Part shown: positions 7,714-56,905 of the stretch, piece after piece
Layout: every line of letters begins with the position of its first letter
Numbering within the stretch: the first letter of the stretch is position 1
From: Octopus sinensis
Taxonomy: Eukaryota
Direction of reading: 5' to 3'
NCBI RefSeq assembly: GCF_006345805.1
Contig: NC_043011.1
Span: 63,996,464 to 64,060,463 of the forward strand
Length of the DNA: 64,000 bases
The notes under the pieces: model-generated
The model's database searches: none
Seen by the model: the letters and a program-made list of their open reading frames with translations, nothing else
Told to the model about the DNA's origin: nothing
Program-made: the position numbers and the translations under genes

Positions 7714-7750
7714 ATGAAGGTTTTCATCTTTATGTCGCTTCTTATTGTTG
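7714..7750 (+). CDS. Gene A exon 1 (signal peptide, MKVFIFMSLLIV+G)
   Basis: ATG at 7714 downstream of a TATA-like site; hydrophobic codons; donor G|gtacgt; homologous to 20737 and 44857. Confidence 0.8.
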
Positions 7751-10700
7751 GTACGTAACCAAATATCTAATTTCAATGAAAGGTCTATGGCTTATTTAAC
7801 TAGTATGCCTTCGAGATTCAATGCCAAAAATAACCATATATTCATTTGTCAATATATCTCGTTATTTAATCACCTCTATTGAACTATCCCTTACATTATT
7901 TGTTGATCCACATGCCAATCTCACAAACTATGTTCTCAATTTTTACTTCTATCGACTTGTAAACAGACACTCAATTTTTTAAACTGACCTTCTTTCGCTT
8001 TATGAATCTCACCCTGAAGCTACAAATATATCTGCAGACAGAAAACGATTCATAAGTAACGACGTTTTTCACAGCATCCGCTTCAGGTGCACTCATATTA
8101 AATAACAAGATTACCAACATTAACGTGTACTTTTGAACATTATTTTATATAAAGTTACGAGAGATATTCGAGGATAGGAATTTGCCAAAACATATCTTTT
8201 TATATTGCAATGTAAGAGTAAAAAAAAGTATGATTTTTGCATACGTATAATTAACTAGGTTTAACTTTCAAAGTTCCAAAATAGACAGAAGCATCACATA
8301 CACTACAAAACATGCCCCCACGGAGATACATCGGATATACCGGACCTTCTCTGGGATAACGTGTTTCCACCTTATACGCCCTACATCAACGTGACGAAGC
8401 ATTACAAGTTATGCATAGCTGAACGTGCGGGAATCCTAAATGACTCGCTCGAACCAGGGAGCATCCTTACCTCCAGAACAGAGATTTTCAAGCCATGCTT
8501 ACATTTCAAGATATTCCTGCCAGCATTTTGGAGCCCGAAACATGCCAGCACAACCGGAAGTCGATAGCCAATGGGAAAGGGAGATAATCATGTTGTTTAC
8601 TTTGTAGGGAAGCTTTAACCTTCCATCTTTTGAATAAGTCCTAGGCCAACAGGTTTTGGGGTCTGACGAGAGGCCATGTATGTATGTATGTTATCTTATT
8701 TTGTATGTATGTATGAAAGAATGAATGAATGTATGTATATTATCTTATTTTTGTAAATGTATCGTTAAAAGTAATTCAGCATATCAGACTATTCATATGT
8801 TTTAAAGTATTCAAGTAAAAGAAATTACAATGATATTAGTTACAGGGTTATTTCAATTCCAGCCTTTAGTTGGCTGTGTGGATTGAATCTTTCGTTATAC
8901 TACCTGACCAATGGGGAGAAAAGGAACTCTGACGTCGTTTATATTATTTCTGGTTACATTCAGTAAACGATATCTATTTATTCACATAAATTTTGAATAA
9001 TGCAATATTTAATGTTGAACCTAAATATTAACGAGTTGCAAAACCAGAAATTAAATTAATCGTTAAAATCAACCACGGAATAATAACTATCTGGCGAAGT
9101 AACCAATCATCAAGGGATCGCTTTTGTCAAAAAGGTTTCCATATCAGGATGAAATAAAGGACTAAACAACTTGCATAATTGAACTTCGAAAATGTTTGAT
9201 AATTTCTTGCATTCTAAATAGTCGTGCCTATAATCTTGAAAATTAGTGCGTAACTAGATCTTGATATACCAATCTAGGCAATTATATAAATTCATCAGTT
9301 TTCTTATCACTAATTACACAAAATATATTCCACTGAGGATTGCGTTTTTATGCTATATTTTATATCTATGAGCTACTAACATTAATCTAAAATTTTAGGT
9401 CCTGATGGAGTTTCGACGTGCACTGAAAAAGCAGACGCTTATTGCAAGGAGGCGAAGATGTCTTATAATGAAATGGTGTTATCGACTGAGTTCTGCAAGT
9501 ATTACGAATTCAATTCTATAATTATTTTTTAACGCACGCACACACAGACATATAAATGACAGGCTTCTTTAAGTTTCCGTCTGTGAAAACCACCCTCAAG
9601 GCTTAGGTCGGCACGTGGCTATAGTAGAAGACACTTCCACAACTTCACATGCAGTTGGACTGAACATGGAAATGCGTGTTTGGAAAGCAAAATTCATACC
9701 ATAGAACCACGCATGCACCTCCTGTTTATTTCTGCGTTGAATTCTGTCGAAGAGCGCAGGCTCGAAACGTTAAATACTTTCCCACTTCCCGAGCGTTAAA
9801 CTAACACATCTGTTTGTTGTCTATACGCCCATCTTCGTCTTTTGCTTTTTTGTAAATTCTCACTATTTATGTATATATATATATATACATATATAGTGTG
9901 TTTGAGTGTGTGTGTGAGAGAAAGGGAGATAGAGAGAGAGGGGGGAAGAGATCTGTGGACATATTGCAATTATAATGAATTAGGTCTAAATGTACCCTAT
10001 GAAGAATTTTCGAGAATCCTTGAAGTTTTTCCTCATAGAATTATTCCATGACTCCGCCTCCATTTTCGATGACTGCTTCAAAGCAGCACCGGAATTTTTG
10101 ACTTGCGTCAATAGAAAAAATATAGCTTTTTCAAATTGCGGTTAATTTATTTACGGCTGTATCTCTTAGTGGATTTACGGTATTTTAGGATTATCAATGA
10201 ATTTCCATTTCTGTAATGTTTCAGTAAAAGGATTTTAATGTGACCAGATTTCAGGCCCCTATGGTGGTTGGGCATAAGGGTAAATCTTGTCTGATATTGA
10301 TTAGGGGTTATGTTGGCTTTGAGAGACAAGTGTCTTATAATATCCCGTCACTGCGTACTTCATCGACCCAAGTTTCGAAGAAAGTCTTGAGCGCCCAGCA
10401 ATATCTAGCAACATCAATTCTCAGATCCTGTGGAAAGAAGCAACCTGTTGTTACAAGACCGTCGTTATTCACCCCTCTTAAAAGCAGTATATTTCCTGAA
10501 AAGTTTATCTACATCATTCAGTATGCTTCAGAATGAACTGTATTTACTCATCTTTTGATCTTAGCAGACATATTTATTTTCCTTATCAAAAACGAACCAA
10601 CGTATAACATGAATGTGAGGTACTTAACATTGTAGGTAATCGTCGGCGCGACGCTTTTCGTTTTGCTTTCATGAACTGGACGTCCTACTCTATATACAAA

Positions 10701-55917: not shown

Positions 55918-56852
55918 GTACGTATACAATGCTACTGAATATCATAAACTATCACTGTGCCTGGCATAGCCATATCCTTTAATTGAGGTTGAACTATCAC
56001 TGATTTAACACTTAATGGTGCCAACAAACCACTTCGTCACACTCATAGATACACTACATGGGTATATATTTTTATATATACTCCAAAATGCCACATAATA
56101 GTCACGTTTCCTGTCATTACCTCGAAATGGATATGATGTCAGGCTATTATAAAAATTACAGAATTGATGTTATCCGACAAAATAATTGATAATTACGTAG
56201 GGTTTATTTAACTTATAGATTTATGTATGTTCTATAGAAAAATATTTACTTATGAGATATTGAATTCTGAATAGACTCTTAGTCTGATATTAATAGATAA
56301 CCATTGCCATTACTCATATGTATAGTTTCGCCTTTGGTACACCTTGTAAGTGGATGATAAAGACAATTATATCAACTACAATGCTCAGCTGCTTCTTATA
56401 TTTTCGTCCCTGAAATAATAATAATAATAATAATAATAATAATAATAATAATAATAATAATAATAATAATAATAATAATAATAATAATAATAATATAATA
56501 ATAATAATAATAATAATAATAAGAAGAAGAAGAAGAAGAAGAAAAGAAGAAGGATGAGAAGAAGAAGAAGAAAAAGAAGAAGACGACATAATCATATTAA
56601 AACTATAGATAGTATCATTGCAAAATAATCGCTATTCAAAATTTAAAAAAGTGGTGGGGAGGAGGAGATTGCAATATGTTTTCTGATATTACTATAATAG
56701 TGAATGTCATATCAATGAAATATAGATGCGATTACAGTTTTAACTTCATTGTCAATTTTTATCAAACCAATAATATCTAAGAAATGGCACATAAATATGA
56801 AATACTCAGTAGTGCAGTACTTTAGATAAACTTATTTTTATCTTCATTACAG

Positions 56853-56905
56853 GTGATGATGGAACTGATTTGCAGTTGTTGTTAAAACACTTACATCTAA
56901 ATAAA
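56853..56905 (+). other. Gene C terminal exon (now 3' UTR; decayed homolog of the A/B tail exon) with AATAAA
   Basis: attacag|gtgatgatggaactgatttgcagt resembles B gtgacattgataaatcagctgattattgcaagt, with indels; AATAAA at 56900-56905. Confidence 0.6.

Follow-up and report, generated by a model that had tools for sequence, protein, structure and literature searches.

The N-domain of RGM proteins is a three-helix, three-disulfide module that grips the fingers of BMP and GDF ligands, and PDB entries 4UHY, 4UI0 and 6Z3J are structures of this domain. GAS1 and GFR-alpha proteins are likewise GPI-anchored, helical, Cys-rich ligand binders. Small, single-domain, disulfide-rich proteins of the Ly6/uPAR type, either GPI-anchored or secreted, modulate cell-surface receptors or ligands and also evolve rapidly in tandem arrays, with a three-finger beta fold and 8-10 Cys. 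In RGMB, residues Arg100, Gly101, Leu103 and His106, located in the turn between helix 2 and helix 3, provide the key contacts to GDF5 and BMP2 (PMC7354924). RGMs are GPI-anchored (PMC10084454).

We analyzed a stretch of 64,000 nucleotides from Octopus sinensis, hereafter the window, which contains three small spliced genes (A, B and C), all on the + strand, and the beginning of a fourth (D). These genes are real and belong to a lineage-expanded family. Our preferred reading, to which we assign a probability of roughly 55%, is that the domain they encode is related to the RGM N-domain by distant homology and binds extracellular ligands.

Gene structure in the window

An initial sequence-only reading had described three same-strand genes with an identical exon plan. 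The genes were recovered on the + strand, and exons 2 (100 nt) and 3 (88 nt) are flanked by canonical AG...GT borders in A, B and C, with conserved splice phases. The spacing C-x7-C-x16-C-x8-C-x7-C-x11-C claimed for the six Cys was also confirmed in all three. The identity of the exon plan stood for this 100/88-nt core, but the full plan holds for A only: exons 4 and 5 measure 39/60 nt in A and 42/60 nt in B with neither found in C, while exon 1 carries deletions in B and has no GT after nucleotide 37 in C. Nor is the cluster limited to three genes, as had been proposed, given gene D in the window and many more outside it. In O. bimaculoides, the orthologues of A and B were modeled independently by NCBI with the plan 37/100/88/36-45/60 nt, and they adjoin each other on the same strand, as A and B do here.

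Within the window, tblastn relates A to B far above chance (E=1e-9 for exon 2, E=1e-6 for exon 3). C compared with A or B alone gives E values of 3-6, which are not significant, and is tied to the family via relatives (1e-13 against family protein P0004 by blastp). Gene A is the only clean gene of the three, with the following exons:

7714..7750, + strand: A exon 1, 37 nt, MKVFIFMSLLIV+G, signal peptide, donor GTACGT
9399..9498, + strand: A exon 2, 100 nt, Cys1-Cys3, AG/GT borders
12012..12099, + strand: A exon 3, 88 nt, Cys4-Cys6 with the CAGHFEYY motif, AG/GT borders
12674..12712, + strand: A exon 4, 39 nt, HEPPKENSSVRNE, a polar linker whose residues include candidate sites of GPI attachment
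13677..13736, + strand: A exon 5, 60 nt with stop, VILKNQLITASLITFFQCM, GPI-signal-like hydrophobic tail matching that of orthologue P0001

An in-frame ATG also occurs upstream at 7660 (reading MFMRQYPTSSLTLTKLLG...), and this is the start chosen by the NCBI O. bimaculoides model. An AATAAA/ATTAAA signal lies at 13986, downstream of exon 5, and a near-identical twin of A (99.3-99.7% identity), either a genuine duplicate or a haplotig, is located 78.5 kb upstream.

The exons of B are as follows:

20737..20773, + strand: B exon 1, damaged, with 1-nt and 3-nt deletions relative to A and both O. bimaculoides orthologues
28672..28771, + strand: B exon 2, 100 nt, AG/GT borders
30467..30554, + strand: B exon 3, 88 nt, holding the most RGM-like stretch, AG/GT borders
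34142..34183, + strand: B exon 4, 42 nt, polar linker
39648..39707, + strand: B exon 5, 60 nt, GPI-signal-like tail

Two options keep exon 1 of B in frame: an ATG at 20748 with donor GTACGT at 20770 (22 nt, 20748-20769, encoding MFMSLLV), or an ATG at 20737 that relies on GTGCAA, a weaker donor, at 20774 (exon 20737-20773). The signal peptide is degraded under either. At the other end, the tail of B shares 17 of 19 residues, counted by eye, with that of its orthologue P0003.

For C and D, we identified:

50677..50722, + strand: C exon 1, ATG and hydrophobic stretch, TT where the canonical donor is expected after 37 nt
53303..53402, + strand: C exon 2, 100 nt, AG/GT borders
53882..53969, + strand: C exon 3, 88 nt, AG/GT borders
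56853..56905, + strand: C possible last exon, unverified; acceptor 56853, VMMELICSCC* (33 nt), stop 56883-56885, AATAAA 56900-56905
62370..62406, + strand: D exon 1, 37 nt, MITYVLISFLII, donor GTAAGT, fourth family gene

In C, exon 1 stays in frame only if splicing uses the cryptic donor GTATCC at +46 nt, and reading through the exon 3 donor would terminate the protein as ...KKCSVS*. Neither an exon 4 nor a 60-nt exon 5 of C was found in the window. The possible last exon has no orthologue support, and C itself has no recognizable orthologue; the last exon of gene F was located through its orthologue's tail, that of C was not. When the regions downstream of C-G were compared by tblastx for 3' exons in common, microsatellites and TEs dominated the matches. 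Exons 2 and 3 of D fall just past the window (C15:64061786 and 64065563), and three further genes follow downstream.

The C-terminal tails are of two kinds. Of 47 family proteins, 34 (A and B among them) have a polar linker and then a hydrophobic C-terminus, and lack a cytoplasmic tail. The linkers of A and B contain N/S residues, and their hydrophobic ends span 10-13 residues. Members of the C type have hydrophilic tails. On these sequence heuristics, A and B are probably lipid (GPI)-anchored, as RGMs are, and C looks to be a secreted protein, presumably. The proposed division into membrane-tethered A and B and soluble C agrees with the tails of A, B and the C type, but the 3' end of C itself is unconfirmed.

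Family size and evolution

Exon matches at C15 63.1-67.0 Mb place about 35-40 loci (at least ~35) on the same O. sinensis chromosome. A lineage-expanded family had been predicted from the window, and it is far larger than the three genes described there. A 14-locus search with B as query returned no significant paralogue on any other chromosome. Among 1.84 billion proteins, we found 46 representative clusters at E<=1e-3, nine of them at E<=1e-10. All named clusters are from Octopus, except for one stray contaminant contig labeled "Campylobacter fetus" that carries a family member; at the DNA level, nothing in this genome matches that contig. Repeating the protein search with a 37-sequence alignment added almost nothing new.

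The six Cys are invariant across 45 family proteins, and some members (P0019, P0006, P0007) carry from 2 to ~8 tandem domains. Orthologues share only 62-75% identity, with dN/dS values of 0.66-0.83 (0.66 for B). As far as the databases show, this appears to be a large, fast-evolving tandem family confined to Octopus. Its named members are all "uncharacterized" or "hypothetical," save one UniRef entry labeled "GDNF/GAS1 domain-containing," and our literature search for this octopus family found no description of it.

Sequence similarity to the RGM N-domain

RGM_N (PF06535; gathering threshold 24.2 bits) is the sole Pfam match of A (13.3-14.9 bits, E 0.03-0.1) and of B (19.1-19.3 bits, E 0.0014-0.0016), in both cases below threshold, and the Pfam scan gave no RGM_N match for C. 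When domains were isolated, RGM_N was the best of 24,736 families in nine out of ten (E 6e-4 to 0.05), with alignments covering positions 5-57 of the 70-position profile. Overall, 20 of 45 family members match RGM_N. Two whole proteins, P0006 (37.9 bits, four repeats) and P0019 (29.1 bits, two repeats), exceed the cut-off, by summing weak repeats whose single domains score 14-20 bits. For comparison, when the N-domain of the canonical octopus RGM is set against the N-domain chains of human RGMB, its score is no higher than 22.7-25.5 bits.

Profile comparisons pointed in the same direction. In a first search of the PDB with the family profile, all four matches were RGMB N-domain chains, although not significant (E 0.066-0.33); in a second run, such chains were the top three of five, and the 37-sequence profile scored below the A/B-weighted one. 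Using hhalign, the family aligned to a three-sequence RGM profile with P=1.7e-4 and the correct Cys register. The family HMM gave 14-17 bits on RGM N-domains, a score reached by only 1-10 of 1000 shuffles in which the Cys were held fixed. RGM_N is the only family to which the sequence searches point, and the link, though specific, is borderline.

The RGMa N-domain string that the sequence-only reading had quoted proved correct against the PDB sequence. Its 12 identities with B are also present, over a span of 26 ungapped positions (counted by eye) rather than the 25 stated. The absence of the vWD-like/GDPH part was upheld: no Pfam scan of the family matched RGM_C, and the proteins stop 26-43 residues past Cys6. 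A canonical RGM with GDPH, sought as a full-length counterpart, is present in the same genome on another chromosome (C2:164.24 Mb). The proposed likeness to the RGM N-domain thus survives in part, with RGM_N favored over neuritin in like-for-like comparisons, but A and B remain sub-threshold and C unmatched.

Fold, cysteine framework and contact positions

Like the RGM N-domain, the family domain is small, has six Cys that presumably form three disulfides, and is predicted to be all-helical. The AlphaFold2 model of the A core (pLDDT 78.6) is entirely helical, with three long helices and a short one. The FC-x8-C-x7-C core is identical, and the residues T/K-R-T and C-x-G-x-hydrophobic-x-Y are shared with B and A. 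The loops differ: Cys1 and Cys2 are separated by x7 in the family versus x4 in RGM; the loop before Cys3 is x16 versus 22-24, as counted from the sequences; and Cys5-Cys6 is x11 versus x21, leaving helix 3 of the family about 10 residues shorter. In contrast to full-length RGMs (RGMa, RGMb, hemojuvelin and C. elegans DRAG-1), the family has no C-domain, no GDPH autocleavage site and no neogenin-binding part. Furthermore, the octopus genome holds one canonical RGM versus dozens of fast-evolving family paralogues.

At the helix 2-helix 3 turn, CAGHFEYY of A resembles CAGSLEYY of octopus RGM. The positions equivalent to Arg100/Gly101/Leu103/His106 are Ala, Gly, Phe and Tyr/Phe in A and B, and Ala, Gly, Leu and Tyr in the octopus canonical RGM. 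Genes C-G no longer encode the Gly of the RGD/RGN turn. The structural check suggested for the family, a Foldseek search of the PDB, did not recover RGM: the A-core model had no match at E<=10, RGM chains included, and neither did a full-length orthologue model (pLDDT 62). Foldseek is known to perform poorly on helical domains shorter than 60 residues.

Alternative explanations

An orphan, octopus-born family of Cys-rich helical proteins could have converged on the C-x8-C-x7-C spacing of RGM_N while serving a rapidly evolving recognition role unrelated to BMPs, for example in marking cell surfaces in the nervous system, in the biology of suckers or chemotactile sensing, in immune defense or in reproduction. 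We regard this as possible but somewhat unlikely. It would account for single-domain scores that always fall below threshold and for a similarity concentrated in the Cys3-Cys5 core, centered on three Cys, as well as for the empty Foldseek search. The high dN/dS, the low orthologue identity, the birth-and-death style of an array of at least 35-40 loci with damaged members, and the lack of any homologue named outside Octopus among the 1.84 billion representatives also fit it. However, residues other than Cys add to the RGM score, as the Cys-fixed shuffles indicate, and a single Pfam family tops nine of ten domains. The GPI anchoring that the family appears to have in common with RGM, together with the predicted all-helical, three-disulfide design, speaks against it too, and so does the comparison with neuritin, which has the same C8C7C core and yet aligns by hhalign only at P=0.094 and in the wrong Cys register. 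Neuritin/CPG15-like proteins, small GPI-anchored neuronal proteins with six Cys, had been named earlier as a caveat and match the general format of signal peptide, C-x8-C-x7-C core and GPI-like tail. Their loop lengths differ, no relationship was detected by Pfam, HMM or hhalign, and we consider this identity extremely unlikely. Specifically, none of 45 members matches NRN1 (PF15056) at E<=10, a genome scan with NRN1 found nothing over cut-off and nothing in the window, and the family HMM gave only 7.2 bits on human neuritin, equaled by 110 of 1000 Cys-fixed shuffles (the comparator was validated at 134 bits against NRN1). On these grounds, together with the hhalign result, a neuritin identity was rejected.

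Membership in the GDNF/GAS1 (GFR-alpha-like) superfamily of helical Cys-rich domains is suggested by the UniRef label "GDNF/GAS1 domain-containing protein" on the two-domain relative P0035 (O. bimaculoides A0A0L8GPX5). Nevertheless, P0035 has no Pfam family at all at E<=1, none of 45 members matches Pfam GDNF (PF02351), neither PDB profile search returned a GFR-alpha or GAS1 chain at E<=10, and none was among the Foldseek results. This identity is very improbable and was rejected on the Pfam and PDB evidence. A different kind of doubt, compatible with the other readings, concerns whether B and C are decaying, non-functional copies that leave A, with its upstream twin, as the only working gene here. 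The frame-disturbing deletions in exon 1 of B, compared with its intact O. bimaculoides orthologue, would be expected under decay, as would a C gene with no exon-1 GT donor, no recognizable orthologue and no confirmed 3' exon; none of A, B or C was returned as an annotated O. sinensis protein by the protein searches. We hold this view to be somewhat unlikely, since B (in exons 2-5) and C (in exons 2-3) keep open reading frames, undamaged splice sites and the full set of six Cys, alternative in-frame starts or donors are present, and the dN/dS of B is not neutral. Moreover, the exon-1 lesions could be assembly errors within a T-run.

Proposed function and significance

Under the preferred reading of a divergent RGM N-domain, exon 1 would encode a short signal peptide, and exons 2 and 3 a single helical domain of ~55 residues with six Cys, presumably in three disulfides. 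In A and B, exons 4 and 5 would supply a Ser/Asn-rich linker and a hydrophobic C-terminus of 10-15 residues, the signature of a GPI-anchor signal, whereas C-type proteins would end in a short hydrophilic tail and presumably be secreted. The domain would thereby be freed from the RGM C-domain, with neither the GDPH autocleavage site nor the neogenin-binding part. Located on the cell surface or released from it, these proteins may bind extracellular protein ligands via the helix 2-helix 3 face; with no bridge to neogenin, they would present or sequester the ligand rather than signal as RGMs do.

By analogy with RGM, the ligands may include those of the BMP/TGF-beta group in particular. BMP binding as the sole function is less likely because of the at least 35-40 loci and the dN/dS of 0.66-0.83; both figures hint at binding specificities that now extend past the conserved BMPs. 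A broader scenario, which we judge distinctly unlikely, is that an RGM N-domain was cut from its neogenin-binding half and amplified into an array of nearly 4 Mb of GPI-anchored, secreted and multi-domain genes. Its products would act as diversified traps or presenters of TGF-beta-family/cystine-knot ligands, or as a code for surface recognition, similar in logic to the protocadherins that the octopus expanded independently.

Should the homology be borne out, these genes would form the first family to use the RGM N-domain alone and in tandem repeats, one of the larger lineage-specific expansions of cell-surface or secreted proteins in octopus, and a natural experiment on the RGM ligand-binding module uncoupled from neogenin. 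Its members would be candidate modulators of extracellular signaling in an animal studied for its neural and morphological novelty. Should it not be, there would still be a large and fast-evolving protein family, restricted to octopus and probably GPI-anchored, in need of a function.

In functional terms, the Ly6/uPAR-type proteins offer an analogy only; the octopus family is predicted to be helical. For partners of highly conserved BMPs, the combination of dN/dS values of 0.66-0.83, orthologue identities of 62-75% and dozens of paralogues is unusual.

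Gene models of the six-cysteine miniproteins

The window holds members of a family of small, probably secretory-pathway proteins with one helical, presumably disulfide-braced domain, GPI-type tails in many members and a massive expansion in Octopus. The peptides claimed for genes A, B and C were located by six-frame motif search and tblastn in the genome that holds the window (2.72 Gb, 13,516 contigs, G+C 34%; window at C15:63996464-64060463), on one strand as proposed.

Exons of family genes (window positions)
7714-7750, plus: gene A exon 1, 37 nt, clean borders
9399-9498, plus: gene A exon 2, 100 nt, clean borders
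12012-12099, plus: gene A exon 3, 88 nt, clean borders
12674-12712, plus: gene A exon 4, 39 nt, clean borders
13677-13736, plus: gene A exon 5, 60 nt, clean borders
28672-28771, plus: gene B exon 2, borders as clean as those of A
30467-30554, plus: gene B exon 3, borders as clean as those of A
34142-34183, plus: gene B exon 4, borders as clean as those of A
39648-39707, plus: gene B exon 5, borders as clean as those of A
53303-53402, plus: gene C exon 2, length, phase and Cys spacing as in A and B
53882-53969, plus: gene C exon 3, length, phase and Cys spacing as in A and B
62370-62406: exon 1 of D, a fourth family gene

The spacing C-x7-C-x16-C-x8-C-x7-C-x11-C, described as invariant in the sequence-only reading, was found in all three genes. 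The identical exon plan of that reading holds for all of A, exons 2-5 of B and exons 2-3 of C, but fails at exon 1 of B and at the exon 1 donor and 3' exons of C. The product of A is MKVFIFMSLLIVG-PDGVSTC...RCP-HEPPKENSSVRNE-VILKNQLITASLITFFQCM, and an in-frame ATG at 7660, the start that NCBI modeled for the O. bimaculoides orthologue, lengthens its N-terminus. Exons of A and B match each other within the window (E=1e-9 and 1e-6), and C is joined to the family via relatives. The A and B models receive independent support from O. bimaculoides CM046618.1, where the orthologues LOC128249899 (A) and LOC128249910 (B) adjoin on one strand and are modeled by NCBI with exons of 37/100/88/36-45/60 nt and AG/GT borders.

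Compared with A and both O. bimaculoides orthologues, the homologue of exon 1 in B (20737) carries two deletions, of 1 nt and 3 nt, and its in-frame options leave only a shortened or poor signal peptide. In C, TT replaces GT at the 37-nt donor of exon 1, and the frame is preserved only by a cryptic donor, GTATCC, at 46 nt; a search for exon 4 of C found none.

Between O. sinensis and O. bimaculoides, orthologue identity is 62% for A and 75% for B, with Nei-Gojobori dN/dS of 0.83 and 0.66, respectively (about 50 synonymous sites). The six cysteines, splice sites and reading frames are all preserved. Such a pattern is that of a functional extracellular family that diversifies rapidly and evolves by gene birth and death; both the damage to exon 1 of B and the loss of the donor in C are consistent with it.

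Protein termini

A and B, the orthologues of both, and 34 of 47 proteins of the family close with a polar N/S/G-rich linker and then 10-15 hydrophobic residues without a cytoplasmic tail. Such an end is typical of GPI-attachment signals. Exon 4, of 36-45 nt and present in duplicate in O. bimaculoides A, encodes the variable linker, and exon 5 the hydrophobic signal. The known ends of the C-G subfamily are hydrophilic, namely that of P0004, the F orthologue, with the last exon of F at C15:64104474; judged from these termini, C-G proteins are probably secreted. The proposed division into membrane-tethered A and B and soluble C is in keeping with the predicted GPI-type tails and the hydrophilic end of the F orthologue, but gains nothing from C itself, whose putative last exon (acceptor 56853, reading VMMELICSCC and a stop, AATAAA at 56900) is without support.

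Identity of the domain

RGM_N is the sole Pfam match for A (E 0.1; isolated domain 0.03) and B (E 0.0016). The suggested likeness to the RGM N-domain is upheld to that extent, but both scores lie below the 24.2-bit cut-off and C has no Pfam match. Across the family, 20 of 45 proteins match RGM_N and at most 2 match any other Pfam family; it is also the best family for 9 of 10 isolated domains, several alignments covering profile positions 5-57 of 70. Two multi-domain members, P0006 (37.9 bits) and P0019 (29.1 bits), exceed the cut-off by summing repeats of 14-20 bits each. Against all PDB sequences, RGMB N-domain chains led both family-profile searches, as 4 of 4 matches (E 0.066-0.33) and then as the top 3 of 5. 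The canonical octopus RGM (C2:164.24 Mb, complete with GDPH) itself scores just 22.7-25.5 bits against human RGMB N-domain chains, which indicates that this domain diverges fast even among true orthologues.

With hhalign, a 37-sequence domain alignment matched a three-sequence RGM profile, built from search outputs, in the correct Cys3-Cys5 register (P=1.7e-4, probability 49%). The alternative of a neuritin-like protein, raised in the sequence-only reading, was rejected: the same comparison gave P=0.094 in the wrong register, and no NRN1 match above cut-off was found in the whole genome. The family HMM scores three RGM N-domains at 14-17 bits, against 4 +/- 3 bits for Cys-fixed shuffles, of which 1-10 in 1000 reach the real value, so the signal does not come from cysteine spacing alone. 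Human neuritin (sequence validated at 134 bits against NRN1) scores 7.2 bits, a value reached by 110 of 1000 shuffles. Named family members in databases are "uncharacterized" or "hypothetical", save one relative that UniRef calls "GDNF/GAS1 domain-containing", an identity unsupported by Pfam and PDB searches. The domain probably descends from RGM-N, at an estimated probability of roughly 0.65.

AlphaFold2 modeled the mature core of A, with the 37-sequence alignment, at pLDDT 78.6, predicting helices at residues 3-14, 22-27, 31-44 and 47-60. Foldseek found no match for this model in the PDB at E<=10, and a full-length orthologue model (pLDDT 62) gave nothing useful; for so short and helical a domain, this outcome says little either way about an RGM-like fold.

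Possible function

On the helix 2-helix 3 face of RGMB, Arg100, Gly101, Leu103 and His106 contact GDF5/BMP2 (PMC7354924). At the contact turn, A and B have Ala-Gly-x-Phe-x-x-Tyr/Phe, near the Ala-Gly-x-Leu-x-x-Tyr of octopus RGM. The miniproteins, whether attached to the cell surface or soluble, may bind extracellular protein ligands through this face. Unlike RGM, A, B and C have no C-domain and hence no neogenin coupling; such proteins would present or sequester ligand. That BMP/TGF-beta ligands are the actual partners appears unlikely; the number of copies and the speed of their divergence speak for partners that are diversified or of another kind. Our literature search found no paper describing the family.

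Family size and distribution

The proposed tandem cluster is real, but larger than the three genes claimed. Gene D, with exon 1 in the window, is the first of four on the downstream side (D, E, F and G), each on the 37/100/88-nt plan. With two members of other subfamilies as queries, exon matches extend along C15 63.11-66.98 Mb and onto unplaced scaffolds, giving at least about 35-40 loci in the O. sinensis genome. The whole of gene A with its flanking DNA (2048-15618, at least 13.5 kb) has a second copy 78.5 kb upstream (C15:63920000-63935198), 99.3-99.7% identical and with small indels. This copy may stem from a segmental duplication of very recent date, or the assembly may have left two haplotypes uncollapsed.

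When 1.84 billion representative proteins were searched exhaustively with a HMMER profile, 46 clusters came up at E<=1e-3. The 30 named clusters looked up belong to O. bimaculoides, O. vulgaris or O. sinensis, with two exceptions: a contig deposited as Campylobacter fetus, and an SRA assembly without a name. The commonest form is a single domain in 80-147 aa; a few members carry tandem arrays of 2, 4 or about 8 domains.

The Campylobacter-filed contig (GCA_016612925.1, JAENPT010000070.1, 322 nt) contains an uninterrupted, intron-free reading frame for a family member of 82 aa that runs from the signal peptide to Cys6, and its DNA matches nothing in the O. sinensis genome. Contaminating cDNA or another eukaryotic read, from another animal, is the probable origin, a hint that the family extends beyond the three sequenced Octopus species. 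Three contigs of about 1 kb from Logan assemblies of public sequencing runs (SRR11869384, SRR11869390, SRR11869391), likely from another octopod, carry an exon-2-like ORF closely similar to gene A (ICTKEADEHC...MTFNEMILSDQFC).

Multi-domain P0007 (O. bimaculoides LOC128248155) and P0019 (O. sinensis LOC118763774), with 2 to about 8 domains, lie on another chromosome; their single domains are among the best-scoring against RGM_N, and of all members these may most closely connect the miniprotein array with canonical RGM. P0005, an O. vulgaris model orthologous to gene G (C15:64251468-64253873), has a second, partial pattern C-x15-C ... C-x7-C-x11-C past the domain, which suggests a two-domain gene or a predicted fusion of two adjacent genes.

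Repeats and mobile elements

Two long ORFs that lie side by side in the interval from gene C to exon 1 of D (237 and 393 aa; 59491-61386, minus strand; YRPISLTS...FADD) look, by eye, like a non-LTR retrotransposon reverse transcriptase, and a related element lies downstream of F (tblastx 2e-56). A 180-aa ORF at 4354-4896 (plus strand) has a GIY-YIG-like stretch (LIYDLTCTRCNRQYICHTKNSLRNRMAVH) and may thereby encode the endonuclease of a Penelope-like retroelement. Dispersed repeat copies with 89% identity (24419-25101 and 34641-35323) occupy intron 1 (5' of exon 2) and intron 4 of B; the latter also contains a roughly 1-kb tandem duplication (35943-36310 and 36944-37310). Microsatellites of the (TA/CA)n type are abundant in the window and produce many spurious Cys-rich ORFs.
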